A DNA stretch of 63,770 nucleotides, the filler included, from Pelomyxa schiedti (taxonomy: Eukaryota > Protista > Evosea): assembly GCA_020536535.1 (NCBI GenBank). It is 11 parts of 11 records of this genome, joined end to end, with 100 filler letters (N's around TTAATTAATTAA, not from the genome) between each part and the next. Parts side by side here need not be neighbours in the genome. Positions count along the whole stretch, not along the records: positions 17,245 to 38,268 come from JAHLWZ010001079.1; 10 more parts are not named here. One strand, 5' to 3'. The notes beneath the pieces were generated by a model. It did not search any database. It saw only the letters and a program-made list of their open reading frames with translations, and was not told where the DNA came from. Made by a program: the position numbers and the translations under genes. Shown here piece after piece: positions 17,761 through 38,268 of the stretch; position 1 is the stretch's first letter; every line of letters begins with the position of its first letter.

Positions 17761-20699
17761 TCAGGTTTCATGGTTGTGAGTGCTTTTATTCTTCTTCTTG
17801 AGGTGAGTGAGAATCTTGTTCACCTTGGGTGTTATGAGAGGGGCTGGAAGAGCTTGTTCCTCCTGAGTGCAGAAAACAAACTCGTCAATGCGAGTTTGCC
17901 TCATCTGTTGATGAACTGCAAGCTTGAGTTCCACAGGCTTGATCACTTTCTCTATCACGTCATCGGCCCAGCCGATTCTGTCTCGGGCAAACTCCCGCAA
18001 CGCTTTGAAGTTGGGTGTGCCCCATGTGAATCCCTCGTGGGAGTGATCAACAACAGGGTTCAGGTATGCATCGTAAACGGCTTTGCTTGGGAATCCCGGT
18101 GAAAGCTGTAGTTTACCCCGCAATGATTTAAGAGCCTTTGGAGGAGCCGTGGTTGTCACTGCAGCGTTAGACGATGATGCGGTTACCCAATCCCTGAATG
18201 CTTCCAAGTTTGGGAATTCGCTGATGATTGAAAGTGCTTTGACAATCCCGATTCCAGAAACGCCTTCCGTGTAGTCGGAGCCAACCAACAGCGCGAGTTC
18301 TATCATGGAATCACGGTCCAGTCCAAGAGTCTCCTCAATTTTCTTCGAGTTGTACAGCTCCGGGTAATTTGCCGAATCGAAGAGTCGTCGGTACACATTC
18401 TTGACACCAAACAGGAGTGTGTCACTGTCATCAGATATTACTCCATCAACGAGTCCCATGCTGTCCAAAAAAGCGCATTGTGCTTCCGCTTCCATCGGAG
18501 CAAGGAGAAACGGGATGCCAAACAGGTGTAAAAGTTCTTGGCACTCGGCGGTGATTTCAGCATTAAGTGTGGTTTCAGCTGATTTTGGGACAATGTTTGT
18601 TGAGAGCATCCCCGCATTATGACCATCCAATGATAACAAGTGGCTTGAAGAGGTTGAGGTTTTTTTCGGTGGTGCTTCGAGATGTTGTGGAGATGGAAGA
18701 ATTTCGGCTCCGGATTCCAAGAAGTCGGCAGTGAGAATATTCGTACATGCGGCATGTCCTCTTTTCTCGGTGAGATGAGACTCCAGGTCACAAGGAAATT
18801 GCGAACTTGCTGAGAAAGCGGTGATTGTGGTGTCTCTAAACTTGGGAGAGTGTGTGAGTCCCAATCCAAATTCGGTCCTGGCAAGTTTATCTTCCTCCAG
18901 AAGTTCTGGAGGAAGACCAAGAGCATCTGGTTCCGCAACACGGGAAGGATCGTTTGTTGTCGAGGTGGTGGCGGTACATTCAGAGAGGGACAATTGAAGG
19001 GCCAACTGCAGATCGTGGTCATACTCTTCCCCTAACGGAGCGGTCGAGGAGACATCTGTAGGGATTGCTGGTGGTGGAACTGATACGGGAGCCTCCTCCG
19101 TTTCCCACTCGATTTCATCATCTGCAAGGGTCAGGAGAGGGCACCTGGCTTTTACATCACTAGTGGATGTTGAAGTCGGTTTTTGTGCACTGTGGGAAAG
19201 GTTTGTAGCAGCTTCGCACAAGGTGGTAAGTGGATTCTGGAGGGACTCTAACTCGTGGAAAAGTGGATGGCTTTTGGCTTGGGCGGGGTTTATGGAGATA
19301 ATGATGTCACCATAATCAGATACATCATAATTTGTTGTACGAGAGCGCTTTGGAGCACCAGGGTCGGCAATAGAGTGTGCAGGTGGGCGTATGCGTGGCG
19401 TAATTTCGCTCTCTGTTTTGACTTCTCCTTGTATATATCCAGTGTCACACGGACCGTTATTGCCAGTGCTTACATTAGAGATTGCTTTCTTTCCAAGATT
19501 TTGACTTGTGCTTGCTGTTGAAGATGTTTGCGGCCCTAATAAATCCTCTTCCAATGGTGTGTGTTGGAGTAAATATTCGGTCGTGGAATCGGAGTTAATC
19601 CTCTGAAATCCTTCCTCTGTGTGACTCTGAAGGGCTTTTATTCGTGTTGTCAGTGCTGCATCTTGCAGCAAAGAGGCCACTTGCTGTTCACTGAACGATG
19701 ACGAAGAGTCTGGAGAGATGCCCGATTGTTTGTGGGTGTAAAATGCCGCCCTTTGGTGGGCTTGTTGCTTTCTACCCTGCTGAAATTTCAACAGTAGTTC
19801 CAACTGAATTTCTTCAGGAAGCTCTTTTAAGACGTTCTCATCAAACCCCGTAGCAGCAAAGAAGAGTGATTCATCACTGCTCCCTTCTACGGGTTCTTCC
19901 CCATAAGCACTCACATCGAAGTCATCAACGCATATGGGGTCAGAGGCATGTGTCCCAGTCTTGCATGTACCTTTTTCAATGAATATATACATATTCAGGA
20001 AACAGCAGAATACGAACCCCCCTCTGAGCCAGTTGAAGTAGGTGAGGTTGAGCTAGTACAACAACTACCACGTGCAATTGGTGAACCAGATAGCGCAAGT
20101 GGCGATGATGAACTGCATGCTCCACATGCAGATGAGGAAGAACTAGTGGTAGTACAATTTATCGAATCGGTCGCCGCAGTACAAGACGCCGCGGTAGAAT
20201 TAGAGATAGAGCTAGAATTCGAAGTTGACGTAGTAGAATTCGACACAGTGGCATTGTCGACATCGGCAGCAGCGGAAGCAGAAGTAGCGTTATCGACATC
20301 AACAGGGAGGTCCGAGAACGAGCCCCTCGATTTGTGAAGCTTGGCCAACCTCCGGGCTACTTTCTTGATCTCGGCGTCAGGCCTCGAGTCCCGCCTCCTC
20401 CTCCTCGCCTCCAGGGTCTTCATCTTCAGCGCGGGCGTGGCGCCGTCGAACACGATTACGGGACGCACGCCGAACGCGAGCAGCTTGCAGCACCGGCGCA
20501 TGAGCCCCGCGAGGTGCGCCACCCGCGCCGACGACGACCCCGACGCGGTGGAGATGTCGTCGCGGAACGAGGCCGAGCCTTGGAGGAACCCGACAAGCCA
20601 GATGCTGACGTCGACCGCGAGGCGTTGGTTGAAGAGGCTGTCGAGCGAGACGCGCCGGCCGCTGGCCGCCAGCAACTCCCATAATTTGGGTACTCCCAT
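17761..20699 (-). CDS. ERCC5: XPG/RAD2 structure-specific endonuclease (nucleotide excision repair)
   Basis: XPG-N MGVPKLWELL..RLAVDVSIWL..PVIVFDGATPALK; long spacer with UBM/UIM-like motifs (LKELPEEIQLEL, DLQLALQLSLSE); XPG-I PFLLAPMEAEAQCA..SDDSDTLLFG..LLVGSDYTEGVSGIGIVKA. One short intron near 19970-20010. Confidence 0.92.
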
Positions 20700-21023: not shown

Positions 21024-23092
21024 TCAGCTGGAGTGGAGGGATGCTTCAGAGGATGTGGAGCGGCTTCTGGATGGTTGTTGCTGGTGTGGCTGTGCTGTGG
21101 TTGTGTTGTTGGTGTTGGTGTTGTTGTTCTGCGGGGATTCGCCGTTTTGTTGGTACAGCTGGTACTGTGCAAGTGGGTGTTCTGAATTGGGTTGGTGGTG
21201 GTTGCTAGCGGGCTGGTGGTGCGGAGATTGCTTGACACCCGCGGTCACATCCCCGCCGGGATCCCCGTTTGTTGCTGCTTGGGTGGGCCGCACCGCCGCG
21301 GCCCCCATTGGCCCTCCGGTGCTCCCTCCAAAAGCGGCTCCATTGGTAGCTGGTGCAGTGGTACTAGTGGGTAAGCCGCCGGAAGCCCCCACTGTGGGGC
21401 CTCCTCCAACTCCGACGCCATTGGAGTTTCCGCCGGTAGATGTGCCTAGACCTGGGGAAGAGCACAAGGTGCCGGAGTTGTAGGGCTGAAATGGGTCGAA
21501 GTCCGACATGGATTGGAACGGTATTTGTTCCAGCCATTGCAATACAGTAGCATGTTTCCCGTCGTGTGTTACACATTCATGCAAAAATGGGGTGCATCCA
21601 TCTCTTACCTCCATAGGTCGCGTACTATAGCCAATTAATTCGCATTGTATAAATGTCCCGCGCCCACGGTCACATATCAATACGGCATTGTCTTTGCCAG
21701 TAGTCAACTTGCTGCCAATGAGTATTGGCATGCCATTTGTGCGTACTGCAACACCAGGTAATACATTTTCATAAATACTGCAAGAGTTGAAGAGACCGCA
21801 TCCCCGGTTGTGAACATAGACACCGTTGCTATCTCCCTTGAAAATTGAGCAGGAGTTGACAACGGGATTGCCCCCGGCTCGCACTTCAATGCCAGGCATC
21901 TGATTTTGCCTAACCATACAGCCGCTCACAACTCCTCTTCCACTGTCGTAGATAAGAACTCCAGCATTTCTGCCATCTCGTACTATGCAGCCACTGACTA
22001 TGGGATCACCTCCTGTGCATGTAGCCACGCCCGGAAGAGCATTGCCCCAGATATCACACACTGCAAAAATTCCCATGCCTTCATCCCGTACAAATACACC
22101 ATTACTCTCTCCAGCACCTATGCTACAATGATCTAGAACAGGATTTGCTCGTGTTGTTACAAGTACTCCCGGTTTGTTATTGTGCTCGAAAGTACAGTTT
22201 GTTAAATAGCCCTTCGCACTTTCGCGGGCATGTAGACCTGTACCACAGTGTGTTATACTGCAATTGAAAAAAACTGGTTCAGATTCACTTTCAATGACAA
22301 TTCCCTGATGAAGTTCAGTGAGAAAGGAGCGAGAGGGGGCGAACCGTTGAAGAACCAGAAATCATGCAGTGGTGCAACTGACCCTGCGCATGGTCACTGA
22401 AGACAACACCGGCCCTATCTGTGGATATGATTGAACACGTGTGCAGTATGGGAAATCCATTTCTGCCTTGCACTGAAAGTCCGTCCTTTCCACCTTAGAG
22501 ATAATTGTTACTGCGTTATTTAGTGGATGAATATGTGTACCTGATATTGTGCATGAAACTAGCATAACTTGTCCAGCAGTTACTTGTACAGCTGAGGTGC
22601 TACGACTACAAGTCAAGTTTAACTTTTCGATAACAACTCTTGGACATCGTTAAGGAAGGGGCTACGTTGAAATTGCACTACCTTTCCGTTTTCTCGACGT
22701 CGAGTGCCAGATTGATTATTATGTTCCCGTTCACAGAGGCTCCCTCTGTTCCAGTAAGGTGCAACGGTTTGTCAATAAGAACTTCGCGTTTTTCGTCGTA
22801 AGTTCCCGGCCTGATAGTTATCTTGGTTCCAGCAGGGCTCATGTCCACCGCTACATATTTTATTAAGGAAATAGAGAAAAGCCGTGTGCGTCACAGTAGC
22901 AACACACCATCTGCGACATTGCGAAAATCGCCACCACTTGGAGCAACAACGACGTTGGAAGATCTCCGCCTACTTTTTTGATAAGTTATTTGGTCATTCC
23001 TTGTTGACTATCGGCCGTGTTGTTCAGTTTTTTTTTCACGCGTGTAATGAGAGTGTTACGTACGATCTTGACTGCGACGAACACGAACCCAT
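21024..23092 (-). CDS. Right-handed parallel beta-helix (PbH1/CASH, FBXO11-like repeats) protein with MGSCSS N-terminus, no F-box
   Basis: Spliced start MGSCSSQSRS|RRSSNVVVAPSGGDFRNVAD|AVDMSPAGTKITIRPGTYDE; repeats such as DIWGNALPGV, MVRQNQMPGIEVRAGGNP, SIYENVLPGVAV. Confidence 0.75.
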
Positions 23093-31400: not shown

Positions 31401-34400
31401 GGGGTTATATTTCTTTTTTCCCAATGCGAATCCCCAAGTAACCCTTGCTTGTATCAAGTTATTATGCCCTGACAGTCATCCTTGATTTGTTCAATAAGAG
31501 AAATAAAAAGTTCTTGATCTACAGGTGTTACCTTGATCGCTTCATCGAACATTATTTTAAGTGTGAGTGTCAAACTGGCCTTTTGCTTTTTTTTTCCAAC
31601 ATTTTGTGCTAGTTGGAAATGCTCATAGAAACCTCTTCAAGTGCCTTATTTATGTTTTAGAGAATACATCTGAAAAATCCCGCCTTGTGCAAACTTTGAA
31701 GGTATCCCTCCAACACCTGCATACATGAACTATTTCTTCTGTTGAACCCATTTCTCAGGTTCTACCAGCTATTATTCAGTTTATCCTTGTATCAAGGAAG
31801 AGTTATGATGAAATCAATGACACTCATGGAGATGGCGAGTTTCTTCATCAAATTGAAGAATGCTTGAAGCTATTAAACTCCAAAATCAAGGAAAACGACA
31901 ATATTGCCAGTGCAGTTGCCCAGGTGACATCTAAAAAATGGCCAGTTTCACACCAAAACTCTCCTCAGGAGTATGATGTACTACTGCAAGTTTTGCACGA
32001 CATATTTAATCATGAGAAGCTCTGTACCATATTCCTAGATTTTCTTGGCACAGTGCCCTTCAATAAAGGGAAACAAATTCTCAACAAACACGTTATAGAT
32101 TTGGTGATGCGAGTACTTGGAGATACTGTGAAACTTGATGAAGGTCTACATTAAAAACTTTTTTGCTTCATTTAAGAATGCATCATATCAGAACTGCCGC
32201 GCCTCATTCCTGAGATATTCAAGCTCATAACGCCTCAAATTCTAGAGTGTGCTCAACTACTCAAGGAGGTTATCTCTGTTGTTTACTGCCACTGTGTCCT
32301 AAATGGCATCACAGTATGTTCAATGCGTTTCTCGTGTTTTCTACTAATATACTGGCACCCTTTTGCATGGTAAAAAAACCTTAAACAGTGTTCCCCAGTC
32401 GTGTCAACCAGCTTGAGCGACTTTTTCCCTCATTTTGTGAATGAGATAGAACCTTTATTTGCTGTTAAAGCCAATAAAAGTCCGAAGTCTAATAATGACT
32501 TGCCTAATTTTGCACTGTGTCTTCTGTCTGTTGTCAAAATTAACCAACACTTGATCAACAATCCTACATGGAATACAAGTACCTTCCAAGTAAATATCCC
32601 CCATCTTTTAAAATTGACATACATGTATGACTGATAGTGGAAAAACCTAGAAACTTTTTAATGTAATGTGCGTGATACTTCAATGTTCTTGGCTCAAACC
32701 GAATTTGCGTGATTTCGCAAAAGGCGTGATTTCGACTACAGTCTGTAGCCTGCAGGTATCATAAATCCTCCCTTCCCATCCCTCACTCCCATTTTAAGGC
32801 ACAGCTTCTAGCCAAAGCTGCGTTGTTTACTGGATCAGACCAGGTAACAAGAGTAAATGTGAAAAGCACGACTCACTGCCCAATAGAGTGAAATTCTTCT
32901 GTGGTTGAATTTTTTCCGCCTTTGTTTAACCTTATTTGCGGAAACACATGAAATGTCAGTAGGACACCTTGTAACCTCTTTCATTGACTTTGCACAAAAA
33001 AGGGGTATCCGTAATCTCATAAATCAAATTTGGGAAATTCTCCCCAGCAAGCATTCGTTTGCCCCTTTGATACAGAACCTCTTGTCCCTCCTCCCTGTAT
33101 GCTTTTCCATTCTTTTCACAACTTACACAAGTGACAAATACAAACACACTCACAAAAAAGATTCTCATTGGGGATGGAGTCATCAACCTTATATTTTCCG
33201 ATTTATGCATAGCGGAATACAAACTGACGTAAAGCCTACCTCACTAAAACCGCCCCGCTAAGTATCTTCTAGTGGTGCATTCTGTCAGTGTGAAGCGGAA
33301 ACAACAGCTGTCATTGAGTCAGCTTTGCGGAAACGGATATGCACAATTAACGAGCTCAGATGCTTTGTTCAAATGTGATTTGTCACTGCGGTTTTTTCTT
33401 TTACCGATATGTTCAGGTTACGGGAACGTCTTTCAGCACAACATTTGGATAGTCTCTTCAGTGATAACATAGAAGTGTTGGTCAAAAACATAACAAGTGT
33501 GATTGAGCACCGCAACCCAGGTTTTTTTTTTATTGATTTGGAGAATTCTCACAGCCACTAAATAGAAATGCTGAAAGAGACATGTTTAAAGAACTTCTTC
33601 CAAAATGAAGAAGCCTACATAGCCAAACTTCAAGTTTTTTGTGTATGGGTTTGTAGCAATTTGAAGTATATTGATGTTTTTCAAAGTTGACTCATACAGT
33701 AAGTGGAGACGAAAGTGTCAACAAAGTCACCCGATTGTTAAATTTTCATTTGTCTTTCAAAAATCACTTTGTGACATCAGTGGGTCTTGATTGGCCTGAA
33801 TTTATGAAAATCGTGTGCACATCTGACTGGGAACATCACTTACTCACTCCAATATCTGTATTACAGGTGCCTGAATATGCTGAGTTCTTCTCTGGCCACA
33901 TGATTAGTGATCATACGGACACCTTTCATGTTGTCTTTATGAAGCTTTATGAGGTTACTTTCTGTTCGTCCTCATTATTATTTTGACTGCTTTGTAGCTG
34001 CAAGACTTTCTTTCCCAGGTTTTGCTGCAGACCTCAATTCGTTCCTTAATTTCCTGAATAAAGCTTCTTATGTGCACAGAACCTTCCAATCCAGACTTAC
34101 CCTTTATCCAAAATGCACACACCCAGTTGCTTACAACCACAAAAGGTTGTTGGCTACTTCTATTGCTCTTTGTCTAATGTTTTGTTCCACATCCAGATTT
34201 ACTCCGACAAAGATTTGCAGAGTTGATATCGAAAACTGACGGTTTACCAAGAAAGGTTTTACTTTTCTTTTAGTTTCTTCGTTGCTCACCACAGGTTAGT
34301 TCCTGACTGCAAAGCGGACTTTACAGCTGGACGTTAAAGTCCAATCCTACAACCAAGTCTCTGGTGCTCTCACACCCATGCATTTGCTTGTAAATTGATC

Positions 34401-36664
34401 ACCCCCAGGGTGCCTTCCTCTTCCTTACTCTTACCAAAGGTATTCTCTGATGTTGCCGTTATCACTGAGGCAGCTGGGAAAAGATTTTACCTTAAAGCTT
34501 TCATTCCTTTTGAGGAAATTCATACTGTAGAACTTCCGCGAACCCTAAGTATGTAGATGTGAAAAAGATTTTCCATCATGGGTAAATCATCATTCAGCTT
34601 TACAATGCGCATTTGAGATTAAGAAAATATGCCGTGAGGAACAAGAGCGAATGGATTTTGTATTTTGTACACCCAGTGACCAAACCAAATCTCTGGTGCT
34701 GAGGCTGATTACTGAGGGTGGCAAGGTCTATCATACCAGGCAGTACCTCAAATGTCTCATCTAATGTGCAACACAGACCTGTGAACAAGATATATATAAG
34801 GAATATGATACAAGAAAATCCATACTTTCCCGTGTGGTCCCAACAAAAAAACCCAGAGCACAACAGCTAATATCTCTTGAAGATTGGTTTGAGAAAACAT
34901 CAAGCGCATACATTTCGTTCCTTAAGGAACTTGTACTGCCTATACACACATTCACGGAGCAAATAACTTGCAGTCTTACTTGTGGCAAAATTGTGTCTAA
35001 ACAATTCCTTTCTGAGACAACCTATGATAGTGTTCACGTTATCCCTCTTGAAATAGGTACCTTTTTTTTTTTTACTTCAAATGCCTATTGACTACGAAAA
35101 AGGGTTGATTATTCAAGTGAAATCTAAAGTGGTTGAGTTCATTCCACTCACAGCACAATCAAAACTAAGGTTCTTTGTTCGTAAAGGAAAACCAACCTAA
35201 CACGGGAAAAAAGTGAACAAGAATCGGATGTAGTAATAAGCATTCCCGAAAATGGCCGAACATTCTGGTTTCAGAATATTCTTCCTTGTTCGCCAGCTCG
35301 TTTCATCAATGAACTACATGACGTTGCGATAAGGTGCTCTTCCAATTTTAGTGCACTCATTTCAGTGTCTACGACACTCTTCAACTCCCGATGTATCTTG
35401 GGGACTGTGCAGCTTCAGAAACCGGTTTCTTTTTCACATGATACCTATGCTAAATTCGTTTAATCTTGGCCAGGTTGGGAAAGGGGGTTTTGCTGAAGGT
35501 CTGATCTTTATCATATTAACTCCTTCAATGTTCTTACCAGTTTGTAGTGTGGCAAGGTGCCACTGCAGATGGCACCCCAGTAGCTGCAAAAAAGTTTTTT
35601 TCACTGTCAATTTGTTCGACTTACCCCCAAATAGGTTGTATGACTATCGATTTTTAGAAAGTGATGCTAGAAAGGAGGTACATTCATTCGCTCTCGGTCT
35701 CAGTATCACCAAATCTTCAAGTTTCTTAGAGAGGCTCTTCTTCTTCATGATCTTTCAGGTGAACCCGGAATTTTGAAATTTATGGGGGTTTGCCTTAATC
35801 CTCCCCGTGAAAAGGGCATATGTACGTCTTCATACTCCCGACCAGAGAAAGTGATAATAGTGGCTTTGCAGGGATGGTTACTGAATGGTGCTCTTGTGGA
35901 TCTCTAGACAAAATTATTTTTTCTGAACCATACCGACAAGCACTGGACTTGAAAAAGTCTTTGAATATTCTGAAGAATGTAGTTCAGAACAAGTATTCAA
36001 CCTCCATTAACCTGTCAAAAGGTTTGCTCCGCACTTGTCACTCTCCATAAGCGTATGATCATTCATCGGGACCTTAAGCCTGAAAGTAAGTTTCTTCCTA
36101 CAATACTTCCTCCAACCACTGCCTAGACATTCTTCTGCGTAACCTTGACACATGGGATGTGAGAATATGTGACCTAGGCTTATCTCGCTTTGCCCAAAGA
36201 AATAAAACATTGTCACAAGACAACACACCAAAACTGACCGGTCACATCTGTGGCACATTCGGGTGTGTTTCAAACTCCAAAATTCAACTTCCACTGATCA
36301 CCCACAGGTATGCGGCACCTGAACTTTTCGAACAGCATCACGACCACAAAGTTGACGTGTTTGCCTGGGCCCTCATAATGCGGGAGGTACTAAGCGGAAC
36401 GAGAACAACGGACATCTTGACTGTGCCGAAACAGGAGTGGAGTGCCAGGCCGAGGTATACCTCCTGTTTTACAATCCCTCACTCTTTGTGCTTATACTTC
36501 ATTCATAAAGAGAAGTCATGGCAACTCTTATGCCTGTTGAATGGCCGCTTGTACTCCGGAGACTGATTCTTCAGTGCTGCTCGTACTATCCGGCACTAAG
36601 ACCTTCCTTTCAGGAATGTTACCGCACCATTGTGGCGCTGCAACAAACACTAGGCTTTTGTTGA
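28425..36664 (+). CDS. Large multi-exon signalling gene: Pro/Thr-rich N-terminus, DOCK-type C2 + ARM region, DH-PH (RhoGEF-like), C-terminal TKL kinase; single-gene status not proven
   Basis: C2-DOCK-like APFDEQVRINIPLNHLSPVYLYLTL (~30715); DOCK ARM-like EILKFLPPILTQLFYVL (~31280); DH-like KNFFQNEEAYIAKLQ (~33590); PH-like VFSDVAVITEAAGKRFYLKAFIPF (~34440); kinase motifs from ~35473. Confidence 0.55.
35473..36664 (+). CDS. TKL-group protein kinase domain (C-terminal part of the locus above)
   Basis: Spliced VGKGGFAE|VWQGATADGTPVAAKK, FLREALLL, KFMGVCLNPP, MVTEWCSCGSL, HRDLKPE|N, DLGLSRF, GTFG|YAAPE, KVDVFAWA, RPSFQEC. Confidence 0.9.
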
Positions 36665-36716
36665 GTTTTAAAAAGAATTTTTGTAACGTGGTGAAGGAAG
36701 GTGTTATGGTTGCTGG

Positions 36717-38102
36717 TCAATACTTAATGATAAAGTTTAACACCAAGGACGGTGGGATCAACGCAAGGGGGTTGTTTTCGCCGTTAGAGGTGATGTCGAA
36801 AGTGTGGGCGTGATCTCCACTCTCCCTCATAAAATCAGTTCGCTCACCGTAGGCGTTCCCCTCCCGTGTCCAGGCTGGGTATAAACAAGACGGCATCGTA
36901 GACCCAGAGATCCTTGAACCGCAAGATTTGTGGGAATGCATGCCAGTGGTGGAGGTGGTCACACGCCCACCGTGATTGTGGGCTGGCATCTCAGCCACAG
37001 TGAGGGTGTGTGTTGCACTTCCAATTGCCTCGCCAATTTTAGTGTTCGTGGTCCCCATGCCCACAACAGAGCGATCGCGCAGGTCAGGCAACTTTCCCTG
37101 TTGGCCAAATCGCGCACCAAGAAGATAGGCGAGTGGTCGTTGCTCCGGAGACCCGGTATCTAGTACGCGTCCATCACACAATGCCCACCCTGGCGGAGCC
37201 ACATCGCCGGCAAAGGGCATTATAGCACCGGTTGGTAGGGTCAACTCTGCTTTGAGGTTCTGCAACATTCGGGCGTGTTGTTCTTCATAGCGTTGTTGAA
37301 ATTGCTGGAGCATATTGATTGCAGGATATAATTGTTTGAACAGGCAGGATTCCAGGTGAGCGGAAATTGCAGAGCGTTTGCCTAGATAGTTGGTGAGATA
37401 TAAAAGAACAGTATTATGATGAGCGGGAACCCACCAACCCATGAACAACCAATAACATTTTCTATACAGTGGATTTCTTTCATAGGACAATCCTTATCTT
37501 CATGACATTGCTGGTTTATTGGTGCAACTTGAGCACTACAGCCAAGAGTGCACGCTAGTTATAGTTGAGGTAACCAATATGATGCTACGGAAATGGGAAT
37601 TTGCAGACCTGTTGGACATATTTGCATATGTGCTTCAAGGTCTTTCCTCATAAACTGCTTCTTGCACTCATGTGTGCACGTTAATTGGAAATTCGGGCAG
37701 TTTTCATTGTTGTGCTGCTCTTGATTGCTAGCAGGTAATACGGCACCACATCCGTTACTGCATGCTGCGTTATTACCTCAGAAAAAGAAATATATGTAGC
37801 AATCCTTACCGCGAGGGCATATCCAAATATGCTCCTTGGAGTTGATAGACTTTCTTTTCAGGGATACCTTGCAAAAGGTGCAAGGAATGACAAAATCAGG
37901 GCACACTTTCGAGTGTTGATCAATTGTTGTTGGGTCATACTTGTCACCACATCCAAATTTGCACACTATCCCTTATATTGAGAAAAATAGCCACAAAAGA
38001 CAAGGAAAACAAACCCACAGGGCAGTGTTCAATGTGCACCACTAGGGTGTCCCTGTTCATTTCATCCTTGCAATTAGGACACCTCACCATAAAAGCAGCA
38101 AG
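36717..38102 (-). CDS. TRAF-type zinc-finger repeat + coiled-coil protein fused to a phage tail-collar domain; 5'-truncated, 4 introns
   Basis: Exons give CPNCKDEMNRDTLVVHIEHCP, CKFGCGDK..QHSKVCPDFVIPCTFC..EHIWICP, CSNGCG..QHNNENCPNFQLTCTHEC..EAHMQICP, CTLGC..CHEDKDCPMKEIHCIENVIGC..SAHLESC; then a helical Q-rich linker; then LPTGAIMPFAGDVAPPGWALCDG...LPDLRDR..VG...GSATHTLTVAEMPAHNH...IPPSLVLNFIIKY*. Confidence 0.85.
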
Positions 38103-38167
38103 CTACACACCAACAAACACCATTAGTCCAACACCCATTTCCCCATTTAAAAAAATTGAAGCACCCC

Positions 38168-38268
<101 letters not shown>

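Follow-up and report, generated by a model that had tools for sequence, protein, structure and literature searches.

A Pelomyxa schiedti gene in which TRAF-type zinc fingers are joined to a predicted phage-type fibre tip

The stretch of DNA analysed here (the window, 63,770 nucleotides of the Pelomyxa schiedti assembly GCA_020536535.1) carries, at 36717-38102 on its minus strand, a five-exon gene whose product joins an array of TRAF-type zinc fingers to a C-terminal domain resembling the tips of phage tail fibres. The gene is real and transcribed, and the fusion is not an artefact. It lies near the end of the piece contributed by contig JAHLWZ010001079.1 (positions 17,245 to 38,268), and its four short GT-AG introns are all phase 1 and 45-54 nucleotides (nt) long. 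The model was assembled from the open segments found on reading the reverse complement of 38268-36600, and a word-index search returned a 100% identical protein, Pelo_16082, deposited at NCBI as a P. schiedti "hypothetical protein" of 380 amino acids (aa). An earlier note on this DNA had described TRAF-type fingers, a helical Q-rich linker and a tail-collar signature, all of which were recovered on the minus strand by Pfam, by an AlphaFold (AF2) model and by the gene model. The upstream exons are indeed split by GT-AG introns, four in number, and the collar shares one exon (exon 5) with the last finger, as that note had also stated, with the added detail that intron 4 splits this finger. The features of the locus, in the direction of transcription, are the following.

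38150..38268, no strand assigned: (CA)n microsatellite with which the piece ends and in which every public assembly examined breaks
38015..38102, minus strand: exon 1, finger 1 (C-x2-C ... H-x3-C), with an ATG at 38090 and the frame open from 38102
37966..38014, minus strand: intron 1, 49 nt, GT-AG, phase 1, at the CPx/xC finger joint, the same position as introns of the paralog KAH3743744.1 (P0174)
37810..37965, minus strand: exon 2, TRAF-type finger unit, sub-threshold for zf-TRAF/zf-TRAF_2 alone and above cut-off in the whole protein
37765..37809, minus strand: intron 2, 45 nt in the NCBI model; the other acceptor gives 33 nt and exon 3 from 37776
37609..37764, minus strand: exon 3, TRAF-type finger unit, zf-TRAF 29.4 bits from this exon alone
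37555..37608, minus strand: intron 3, 54 nt, GT-AG, phase 1
37435..37554, minus strand: exon 4, first half of the last finger, ending C-S-W-V-G, present in a spliced cDNA-like contig
37382..37434, minus strand: intron 4, 53 nt, phase 1, within the Gly codon after C-x-W-x, at the same position and phase in the paralog KAH3763932.1 (P0102)
36717..37381, minus strand: exon 5, 665 nt, a single uninterrupted frame including the stop
37344..37381, minus strand: first part of exon 5, which completes the last TRAF finger with its H-x3-C half, from the gene model and paralog alignment
37239..37343, minus strand: helical Q-rich linker of about 35 residues with imperfect heptads, from the AlphaFold helix and a heptad count
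37068..37229, minus strand: Collar domain, Pfam PF07484 (E 2e-13 to 6.5e-13), with AlphaFold support and a structural match to T4 gp12
36720..37067, minus strand: fibre-tip "head" with three His-x-His motifs and the C-terminal strand ...LNFIIKY, from the family alignment, the Pvc13 match and the PHROG match
36717..36719, minus strand: stop codon, 52 nt from the stop of a convergent kinase gene

The N-terminal half consists of four TRAF-type finger units of the pattern C-x2-4-C ... H-x3-C. The Pfam scan, which was run on the identical database protein Pelo_16082 and also exon by exon, gave zf-TRAF at 37.6 bits and zf-TRAF_2 at 35.1 bits in the whole protein, both above the cut-off of 27. Introns 1-3 are located at the CPx/xC joint between finger units, exons 1-4 hold about one unit each, and the frame of exon 5 contains the remaining half finger, the linker and a 174-residue C-terminal domain ending ...LNFIIKY. 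At intron 2, which no RNA contig crosses in the runs examined, the 33-nt version was dropped and the 45-nt acceptor of the NCBI model favoured, because the CPxxC spacing is constant at every finger joint of the paralogs. The linker was modelled as a single helix over residues 2-47 of exon 5, with a predicted local distance difference test (pLDDT) score of 88-96 per block to residue 40 and of 76 for residues 41-50.

The C-terminal domain reads, from its sequence, as a complete gp12-type receptor-binding tip, that is, a collar together with a His-x-His head. Collar (PF07484) scored 48.9-50.4 bits (cut-off 24; E 6.5e-13 in the whole protein), so that both domain calls of the earlier note, zf-TRAF and Collar, were above the Pfam cut-offs, and Gp10_C gave a weak 21.3 bits, under its cut-off of 27. 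The last exon matched tail and tail-fibre families in PHROGs with an E value of 5e-23. In a 32-row alignment all the invariant residues of the family were retained by the Pelomyxa domain (LCDG, LPDLR, His-x-His, and the C-terminal Pro and strand), and the family profile covers residues 340-524 of T4 gp12 end to end (E about 1e-12). In the profile alignment the invariant His-x-His, which is the first such motif of the Pelomyxa protein (36972-36980), falls on His445/His447 of gp12, and the ...NYIIK strand falls on the gp12 C-terminus. According to the gp12 literature those two histidines hold the metal ion on the trimer axis, and by homology the Pelomyxa tip would form a trimer with a metal site. 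Among solved structures the best match by single sequence was 9QGO (Pvc13), with an E value of 1.2e-8 over the whole tip. The AlphaFold monomer model had a mean pLDDT of 73, with 76-96 in the ten-residue blocks of helix and collar and 88-92 in those of the collar, and a Foldseek search with it ranked T4 gp37 and gp12 first, the gp12 entry 5lye standing at rank 8 with a root-mean-square deviation of 2.9 A over 63 columns.

Two other assignments for the tip were rejected. The domain is of the fibre-tip type and not an MdpB-type "microcystin-dependent protein", a short protein standing alone that begins with the collar: it ends ...NFIIKY without the ...FIIAxxGxFPxR tail and was placed outside the MdpB clade (SH-aLRT 100). 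A working tail fibre of a phage or injection system does not fit the flanks, which are intron-bearing eukaryotic genes (a kinase and an XPG nuclease), nor an N-terminus that is a zinc-finger array.

Single cells of a polyxenic culture, subjected to whole-genome amplification, were the source of the P. schiedti genome (PMC8887013), and a chimera therefore needed to be excluded. Public contigs were aligned to 34200-38140 as a test of the fusion. Two sequencing runs of one sample yielded contigs that cover 34200-38085/38140 and show 0 differences. A contig from another study, which derives from cDNA since the contigs of that study are without introns, joins 37503-37434 to 37380-37279 and skips 53 nt bounded by CT..AC on the plus strand, which is intron 4; it thus connects the last finger exon (exon 4) with the collar exon (exon 5). 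A contig from a single-cell RNA-seq library spans 36735-37302, crossing the boundary between linker and collar, and has 24 nt in common with the spliced contig. The tip lies in one open frame with the second half of the last finger. The DNA, cDNA-like and RNA contigs thus agree on a single fused gene with no chimeric junction, as the earlier note had supposed. At 36822 and 36843, in the variable head region, the cDNA-like contig of the second study has G for C, both changes being Glu to Asp; depth there is about 3, and sequencing errors or strain differences are possible.

Canonical TRAFs consist of a RING, zf-TRAF fingers, a coiled coil and a MATH/TRAF-C domain. No MATH domain was found in the Pelomyxa protein (Pfam, E up to 0.01), and the fibre tip occupies its position. 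Since MATH/TRAF-C is the defining feature of the family, the protein is strictly not a TRAF and is better named a zf-TRAF scaffold protein. Its finger array matched that of a second P. schiedti protein, KAH3763932.1 (P0102), at 94.7 bits. This paralog, annotated as a pentapeptide-repeat protein, has RING-like, zf-TRAF, pentapeptide and SPRY parts, and KAH3743744.1 (P0174), from the same species and with the same annotation, has RING-like, zf-TRAF and pentapeptide parts. The intron positions at the finger joints are common to P0174 and the intron within the last finger is common to P0102, and in these paralogs, too, the C-terminal module starts in the same exon as the end of the finger. Also near the finger array is a protein of a metagenomic eukaryote in which RING and zf-TRAF are followed by a helix and pentapeptide repeats, and the language-model neighbours of the finger half were all eukaryotic clusters. 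From these comparisons the gene is better described as a member of a P. schiedti family of RING-like/zf-TRAF scaffolds with interchangeable C-terminal modules. Pentapeptide repeats are commoner in bacteria. The earlier note had held that the MATH domain was replaced by the collar. No MATH-bearing relative surfaced, and word-index searches with the finger array alone or with the paralog alignment recovered hardly anything except the query; at that place the nearest paralogs have pentapeptide repeats, and one of them SPRY as well. The claimed replacement is best read as an analogy of architecture, not as a reconstructed event.

The metagenomic gene mentioned above lies on an ENA metagenome contig (L003:1030-1130), and its identity to the finger array of the Pelomyxa protein is 37%. 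After its last finger a TAG stands in frame before the open frame continues, for which a reassigned stop (ciliate-like code) or an unrecognised intron is possible.

The gene is probably truncated at its 5' side by the contig edge, as judged from a first exon that begins by matching a conserved segment of the paralogs, a frame that opens right after a candidate AG acceptor, and paralogs that continue upstream. The candidate AG acceptor (38103-38104) immediately precedes the open frame of exon 1, and the first Cys pair of this exon with its preceding residues fits the L..L.V.C motif of the paralogs in the paralog alignment; exon 1 is therefore probably not the true first exon. The paralogs extend about 90 residues further upstream with a RING-like motif, which in P0102 scored 20.1 bits for zf-C3HC4, just under the cut-off of 21, and the related metagenomic locus has a partial RING. 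It is probable that the (CA)n repeat sits in an intron upstream of exon 1 and hides the 5' exons. The deposited Pelo_16082 protein is N-terminally short even inside its own contig, since the NCBI model begins at an internal Met (38060-38090 region, minus strand) and loses the Cys pair of finger 1 (RCPNC). No signal peptide is apparent in the visible sequence, because the frame of exon 1 opens straight into finger 1, the true N-terminus probably lying beyond the contig; a cytosolic location would be a guess.

The whole protein was compared by an exhaustive phmmer (HMMER) search with 1.84 billion representatives, and the best 150 of 16,936 matches (E up to 0.001) were listed. None of these 150 was a second zf-TRAF plus Collar protein, so that the novelty that the earlier note had ascribed to the architecture holds within this list. 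Four of them match the fingers only and the remainder the tip only, many with tandem collars, and finger similarity was absent from all listed collar matches. An ESM Atlas search with the whole protein gave no usable match. The nearest tips among the matches listed, at 41-44% identity, belong to metagenomic proteins with bacterial signal peptides. In a search for related loci with a 12-row tip alignment, tips from a Verrucomicrobiota metagenome-assembled genome (MAG) and from a giant-virus MAG were 38% and 35% identical, respectively, and the language-model neighbours of the tip half were viral and bacterial. Collar proteins are found in the protist giant viruses CroV, Orpheovirus, Fadolivirus and Terrestrivirus and on GVMAG contigs, and a secreted 191-aa collar protein, CEO97090.1, is known in Plasmodiophora brassicae (PMC9530463). 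Sequence comparison thus supports a non-eukaryotic affinity for the tip against a eukaryotic affinity for the finger array, and the most economical reading, which we consider very likely, is that the tip was acquired horizontally, possibly through a giant virus.

Two short AT-rich contigs (L001 and L002, JGI sample 3300030743; GC 0.32-0.39) encode a coiled coil and then a collar tip ending NYIIKY. They are possibly protist or giant-virus transcripts. L002 contains an in-frame TAG and, just upstream, a long stretch of coiled coil in a different reading frame.

The explanation that we somewhat favour, at a little better than even, is that of an expressed gene of the scaffold family with a horizontally acquired tip, functioning as a trimeric microbe-binding and signalling protein. 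A tip from a bacterium, a phage or a giant virus would have been fused in frame behind the last finger. Helical linker and tip would form a homotrimer, as in all solved relatives, and this trimer would present its C-terminal binding face to a microbial or viral surface ligand (a glycan, lipopolysaccharide or protein) in the amoeba cytoplasm. Bound trimers would cluster the zinc-finger array and the probable upstream RING, and this clustering could start ubiquitin or adaptor signalling, as canonical TRAFs do through their trimeric MATH. Location, ligand and signalling output are put forward weakly. Bacteria and archaea live free in the P. schiedti cytoplasm, namely Ca. Syntrophus and Ca. Methanoregula (PMC10579272), so that candidate ligands exist. 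A role as a microbe sensor, which the earlier note had proposed for bacterial or symbiont surfaces, is hypothetical and plausible. Given a functional gene, the more specific hypothesis that the trimer uses its distal face to bind a surface ligand on bacteria, archaea or viruses, with clustering then activating the finger/RING part, seems to us possible, with a probability somewhat short of even. A still more specific hypothesis must be regarded as unlikely: the protein would be a ubiquitin ligase or adaptor for pattern recognition in the cytosol, with a domesticated receptor-binding tip of a phage or giant virus as its sensor, and by binding the envelope of cytoplasmic bacteria, archaea or viruses it would help to police or tolerate the obligate endosymbionts.

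Several results weigh against the favoured explanation. No RING is present within the piece, the 5' end of the gene being probably cut off by the contig edge, which leaves the ubiquitin-signalling scaffold of the earlier note tentative, and no RNA contig of the runs examined covers exons 1-3. The heptads of the linker are only moderate, about four and imperfect; in the best register 7 of the 11 a/d positions hold a hydrophobic residue. In the monomer model the head is of low confidence (pLDDT 46-70 per block for most of residues 101-210), which is expected when a knitted trimer is folded as a lone chain. A two-domain relative scoring under about 86 bits would fall outside the best 150 matches. 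The identity of the tip to anything among the matches listed is at most 41-44%, and in a 93-row tree, built by a quick method, Pelomyxa has a long branch (0.99) and falls into a polytomy together with tips from phages, bacteria and giant viruses. No donor is named, because the tree leaves Pelomyxa in that polytomy; the horizontal origin claimed by the earlier note is thus upheld by the viral and bacterial affinity of the tip and the eukaryotic affinity of the fingers, while the collar phylogeny gives it no donor. Base composition was discarded as a mark of foreign origin: GC and GC3 (GC at third codon positions) are higher in the tip (0.55) than in the finger exons (0.44), yet the tip is inside the 0.39-0.63 range of the other genes on the piece. 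The intronless last exon of 665 nt was likewise discarded, since longer uninterrupted frames exist on the piece.

That the tip is an old domain, eukaryotic or associated with giant viruses and present in several protists, which Pelomyxa merely shuffled onto its finger scaffold, would agree with the secreted collar protein of P. brassicae (PMC9530463), with the AT-rich environmental contigs L001 and L002 that join a coiled coil to a collar tip, with the presence of the domain in CroV, Orpheovirus, Fadolivirus, Terrestrivirus and GVMAG contigs, and with a tree that singles out no donor. We consider it improbable, however, since nearly all of the 16,936 matches are collar-type and the relatives of known source are all bacterial or viral, no ortholog from another amoebozoan appeared in the searches run, and the eukaryotic cases are scattered, which is the pattern expected of separate transfers. 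By far the least probable alternative is an artefact, either a chimeric amplification contig or a model in which contaminating DNA of a bacterium or phage has been wrongly merged with an amoeba gene. Amplified single cells from a polyxenic culture are a setting prone to chimeras and contamination (PMC8887013), but the contigs of two runs are identical across the locus, the spliced contig of another study bridges exons 4 and 5, the RNA-library contig runs over the linker/collar boundary, finger half and tip are in a single open frame, the intron that opens exon 5 is common to the paralog KAH3763932.1, and a kinase gene with introns lies only 52 nt downstream.

The other alternatives concern function. 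The main rival is that the tip is kept solely as a compact and very stable trimerisation plug, which replaces oligomerisation by MATH or a coiled coil and binds no foreign ligand. The conserved residues (His-x-His, LCDG, LPDLR and the C-terminal strand) are the builders of the gp12-type trimer core, and divergence is greatest and confidence lowest in the surface loops that separate the His-x-His motifs. On the other hand, the entire tip has been kept, variable distal loops included, beyond the collar alone, and in the paralogs this site is occupied by other modules of the repeat or recognition type (pentapeptide, SPRY), which suggests a position for binding modules; we hold the plug to be unlikely. 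A recent and functionless acquisition, that is, a transcribed but drifting fusion without a selected role, is slightly less probable even than the old shuffled domain. It would be in keeping with a single copy in one species, which offers no ortholog for measuring selection, and with the two Glu to Asp differences in the low-depth cDNA contig, but the 390-aa frame is intact, all the invariant residues of the family and all finger ligands are kept in spite of an identity of no more than 44% to any relative, and the gene is spliced and expressed.

The neighbouring genes are those of a eukaryotic chromosome. A protein-kinase gene (about 34990-36664, plus strand), convergent with the collar gene, has four GT-AG introns of 41-46 nt that are spliced out in cDNA-like contigs. 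Further along the piece lie the gene of an XPG/Rad2-type nuclease (17764-20699, minus strand), which has XPG_N and XPG_I on two long frames, and that of a right-handed beta-helix protein (21027-22076, minus strand); as ordinary eukaryotic neighbours, the nuclease and beta-helix genes support the host origin of the contig.

Both domains of the protein are well known, and the union of zf-TRAF and fibre tip, deposited but undescribed, was found in no other protein among the matches listed; TRAF is not mentioned in the P. schiedti genome paper (PMC8887013). If the tip does bind microbial surfaces, the gene would stand as a clear example of a eukaryote that has built the host-recognition module of a virus into a TRAF-type signalling scaffold. 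Were the hypothesis of a cytosolic sensor to hold as well, this would be a new class of eukaryotic innate sensor made from the pathogens' own host-recognition device, and its family would exchange fibre tip, pentapeptide and SPRY as sensor modules while keeping one TRAF-finger scaffold. P. schiedti is an anaerobic amoeba living in an obligate consortium with cytoplasmic bacteria and archaea. Together with its pentapeptide and SPRY paralogs, the gene points to a modular sensor family in Archamoebae, and it may offer a testable entry into how protists recognise intracellular prokaryotes.

A comparison with known systems places the tip close to the receptor-binding domain of T4 gp12 (PDB 1OCY, 1H6W/5LYE, 5IV5), to which collar and head are homologous end to end and with which the ...LNYIIK strand is common. 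In contrast to gp12, a baseplate-bound virion fibre with a long N-terminal shaft that is encoded in a tail gene cluster, the Pelomyxa tip is carried on a zinc-finger array by an intron-bearing gene and has two additional His-x-His motifs. Pvc13 of the Photorhabdus luminescens PVC extracellular contractile injection system (PDB 9QGO) is similar over the whole tip; it is an intertwined trimer whose C-terminal target-binding region resembles the host-binding domains of phages (bioRxiv 10.1101/2025.04.20.649488). Unlike the Pelomyxa protein, Pvc13 has no zinc fingers, carries adenovirus-like repeats as well as N-terminal helices of the contractile-injection-system type, and exerts its action on eukaryotic targets extracellularly. 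The collar proteins of giant viruses and protists (CroV, Orpheovirus, GVMAG contigs, and P. brassicae CEO97090.1) have the same domain and may represent possible donors or parallel acquisitions, but none is fused to TRAF fingers, their identity is about 35% or less, and no sister relationship is supported. The paralogs P0102 and P0174 share a homologous finger array and the introns at the finger joints, P0102 also that of the last finger, and differ in ending with pentapeptide repeats (P0102 also with SPRY) instead of a fibre tip. With respect to canonical TRAFs, the Pelomyxa protein is without MATH/TRAF-C, shows no RING and has a linker of only about 35 residues; on the other hand, it resembles them in having a TRAF-type finger array followed by a helical segment and then by a C-terminal module that is expected to be trimeric, as well as in the RING-like N-termini of its paralogs.

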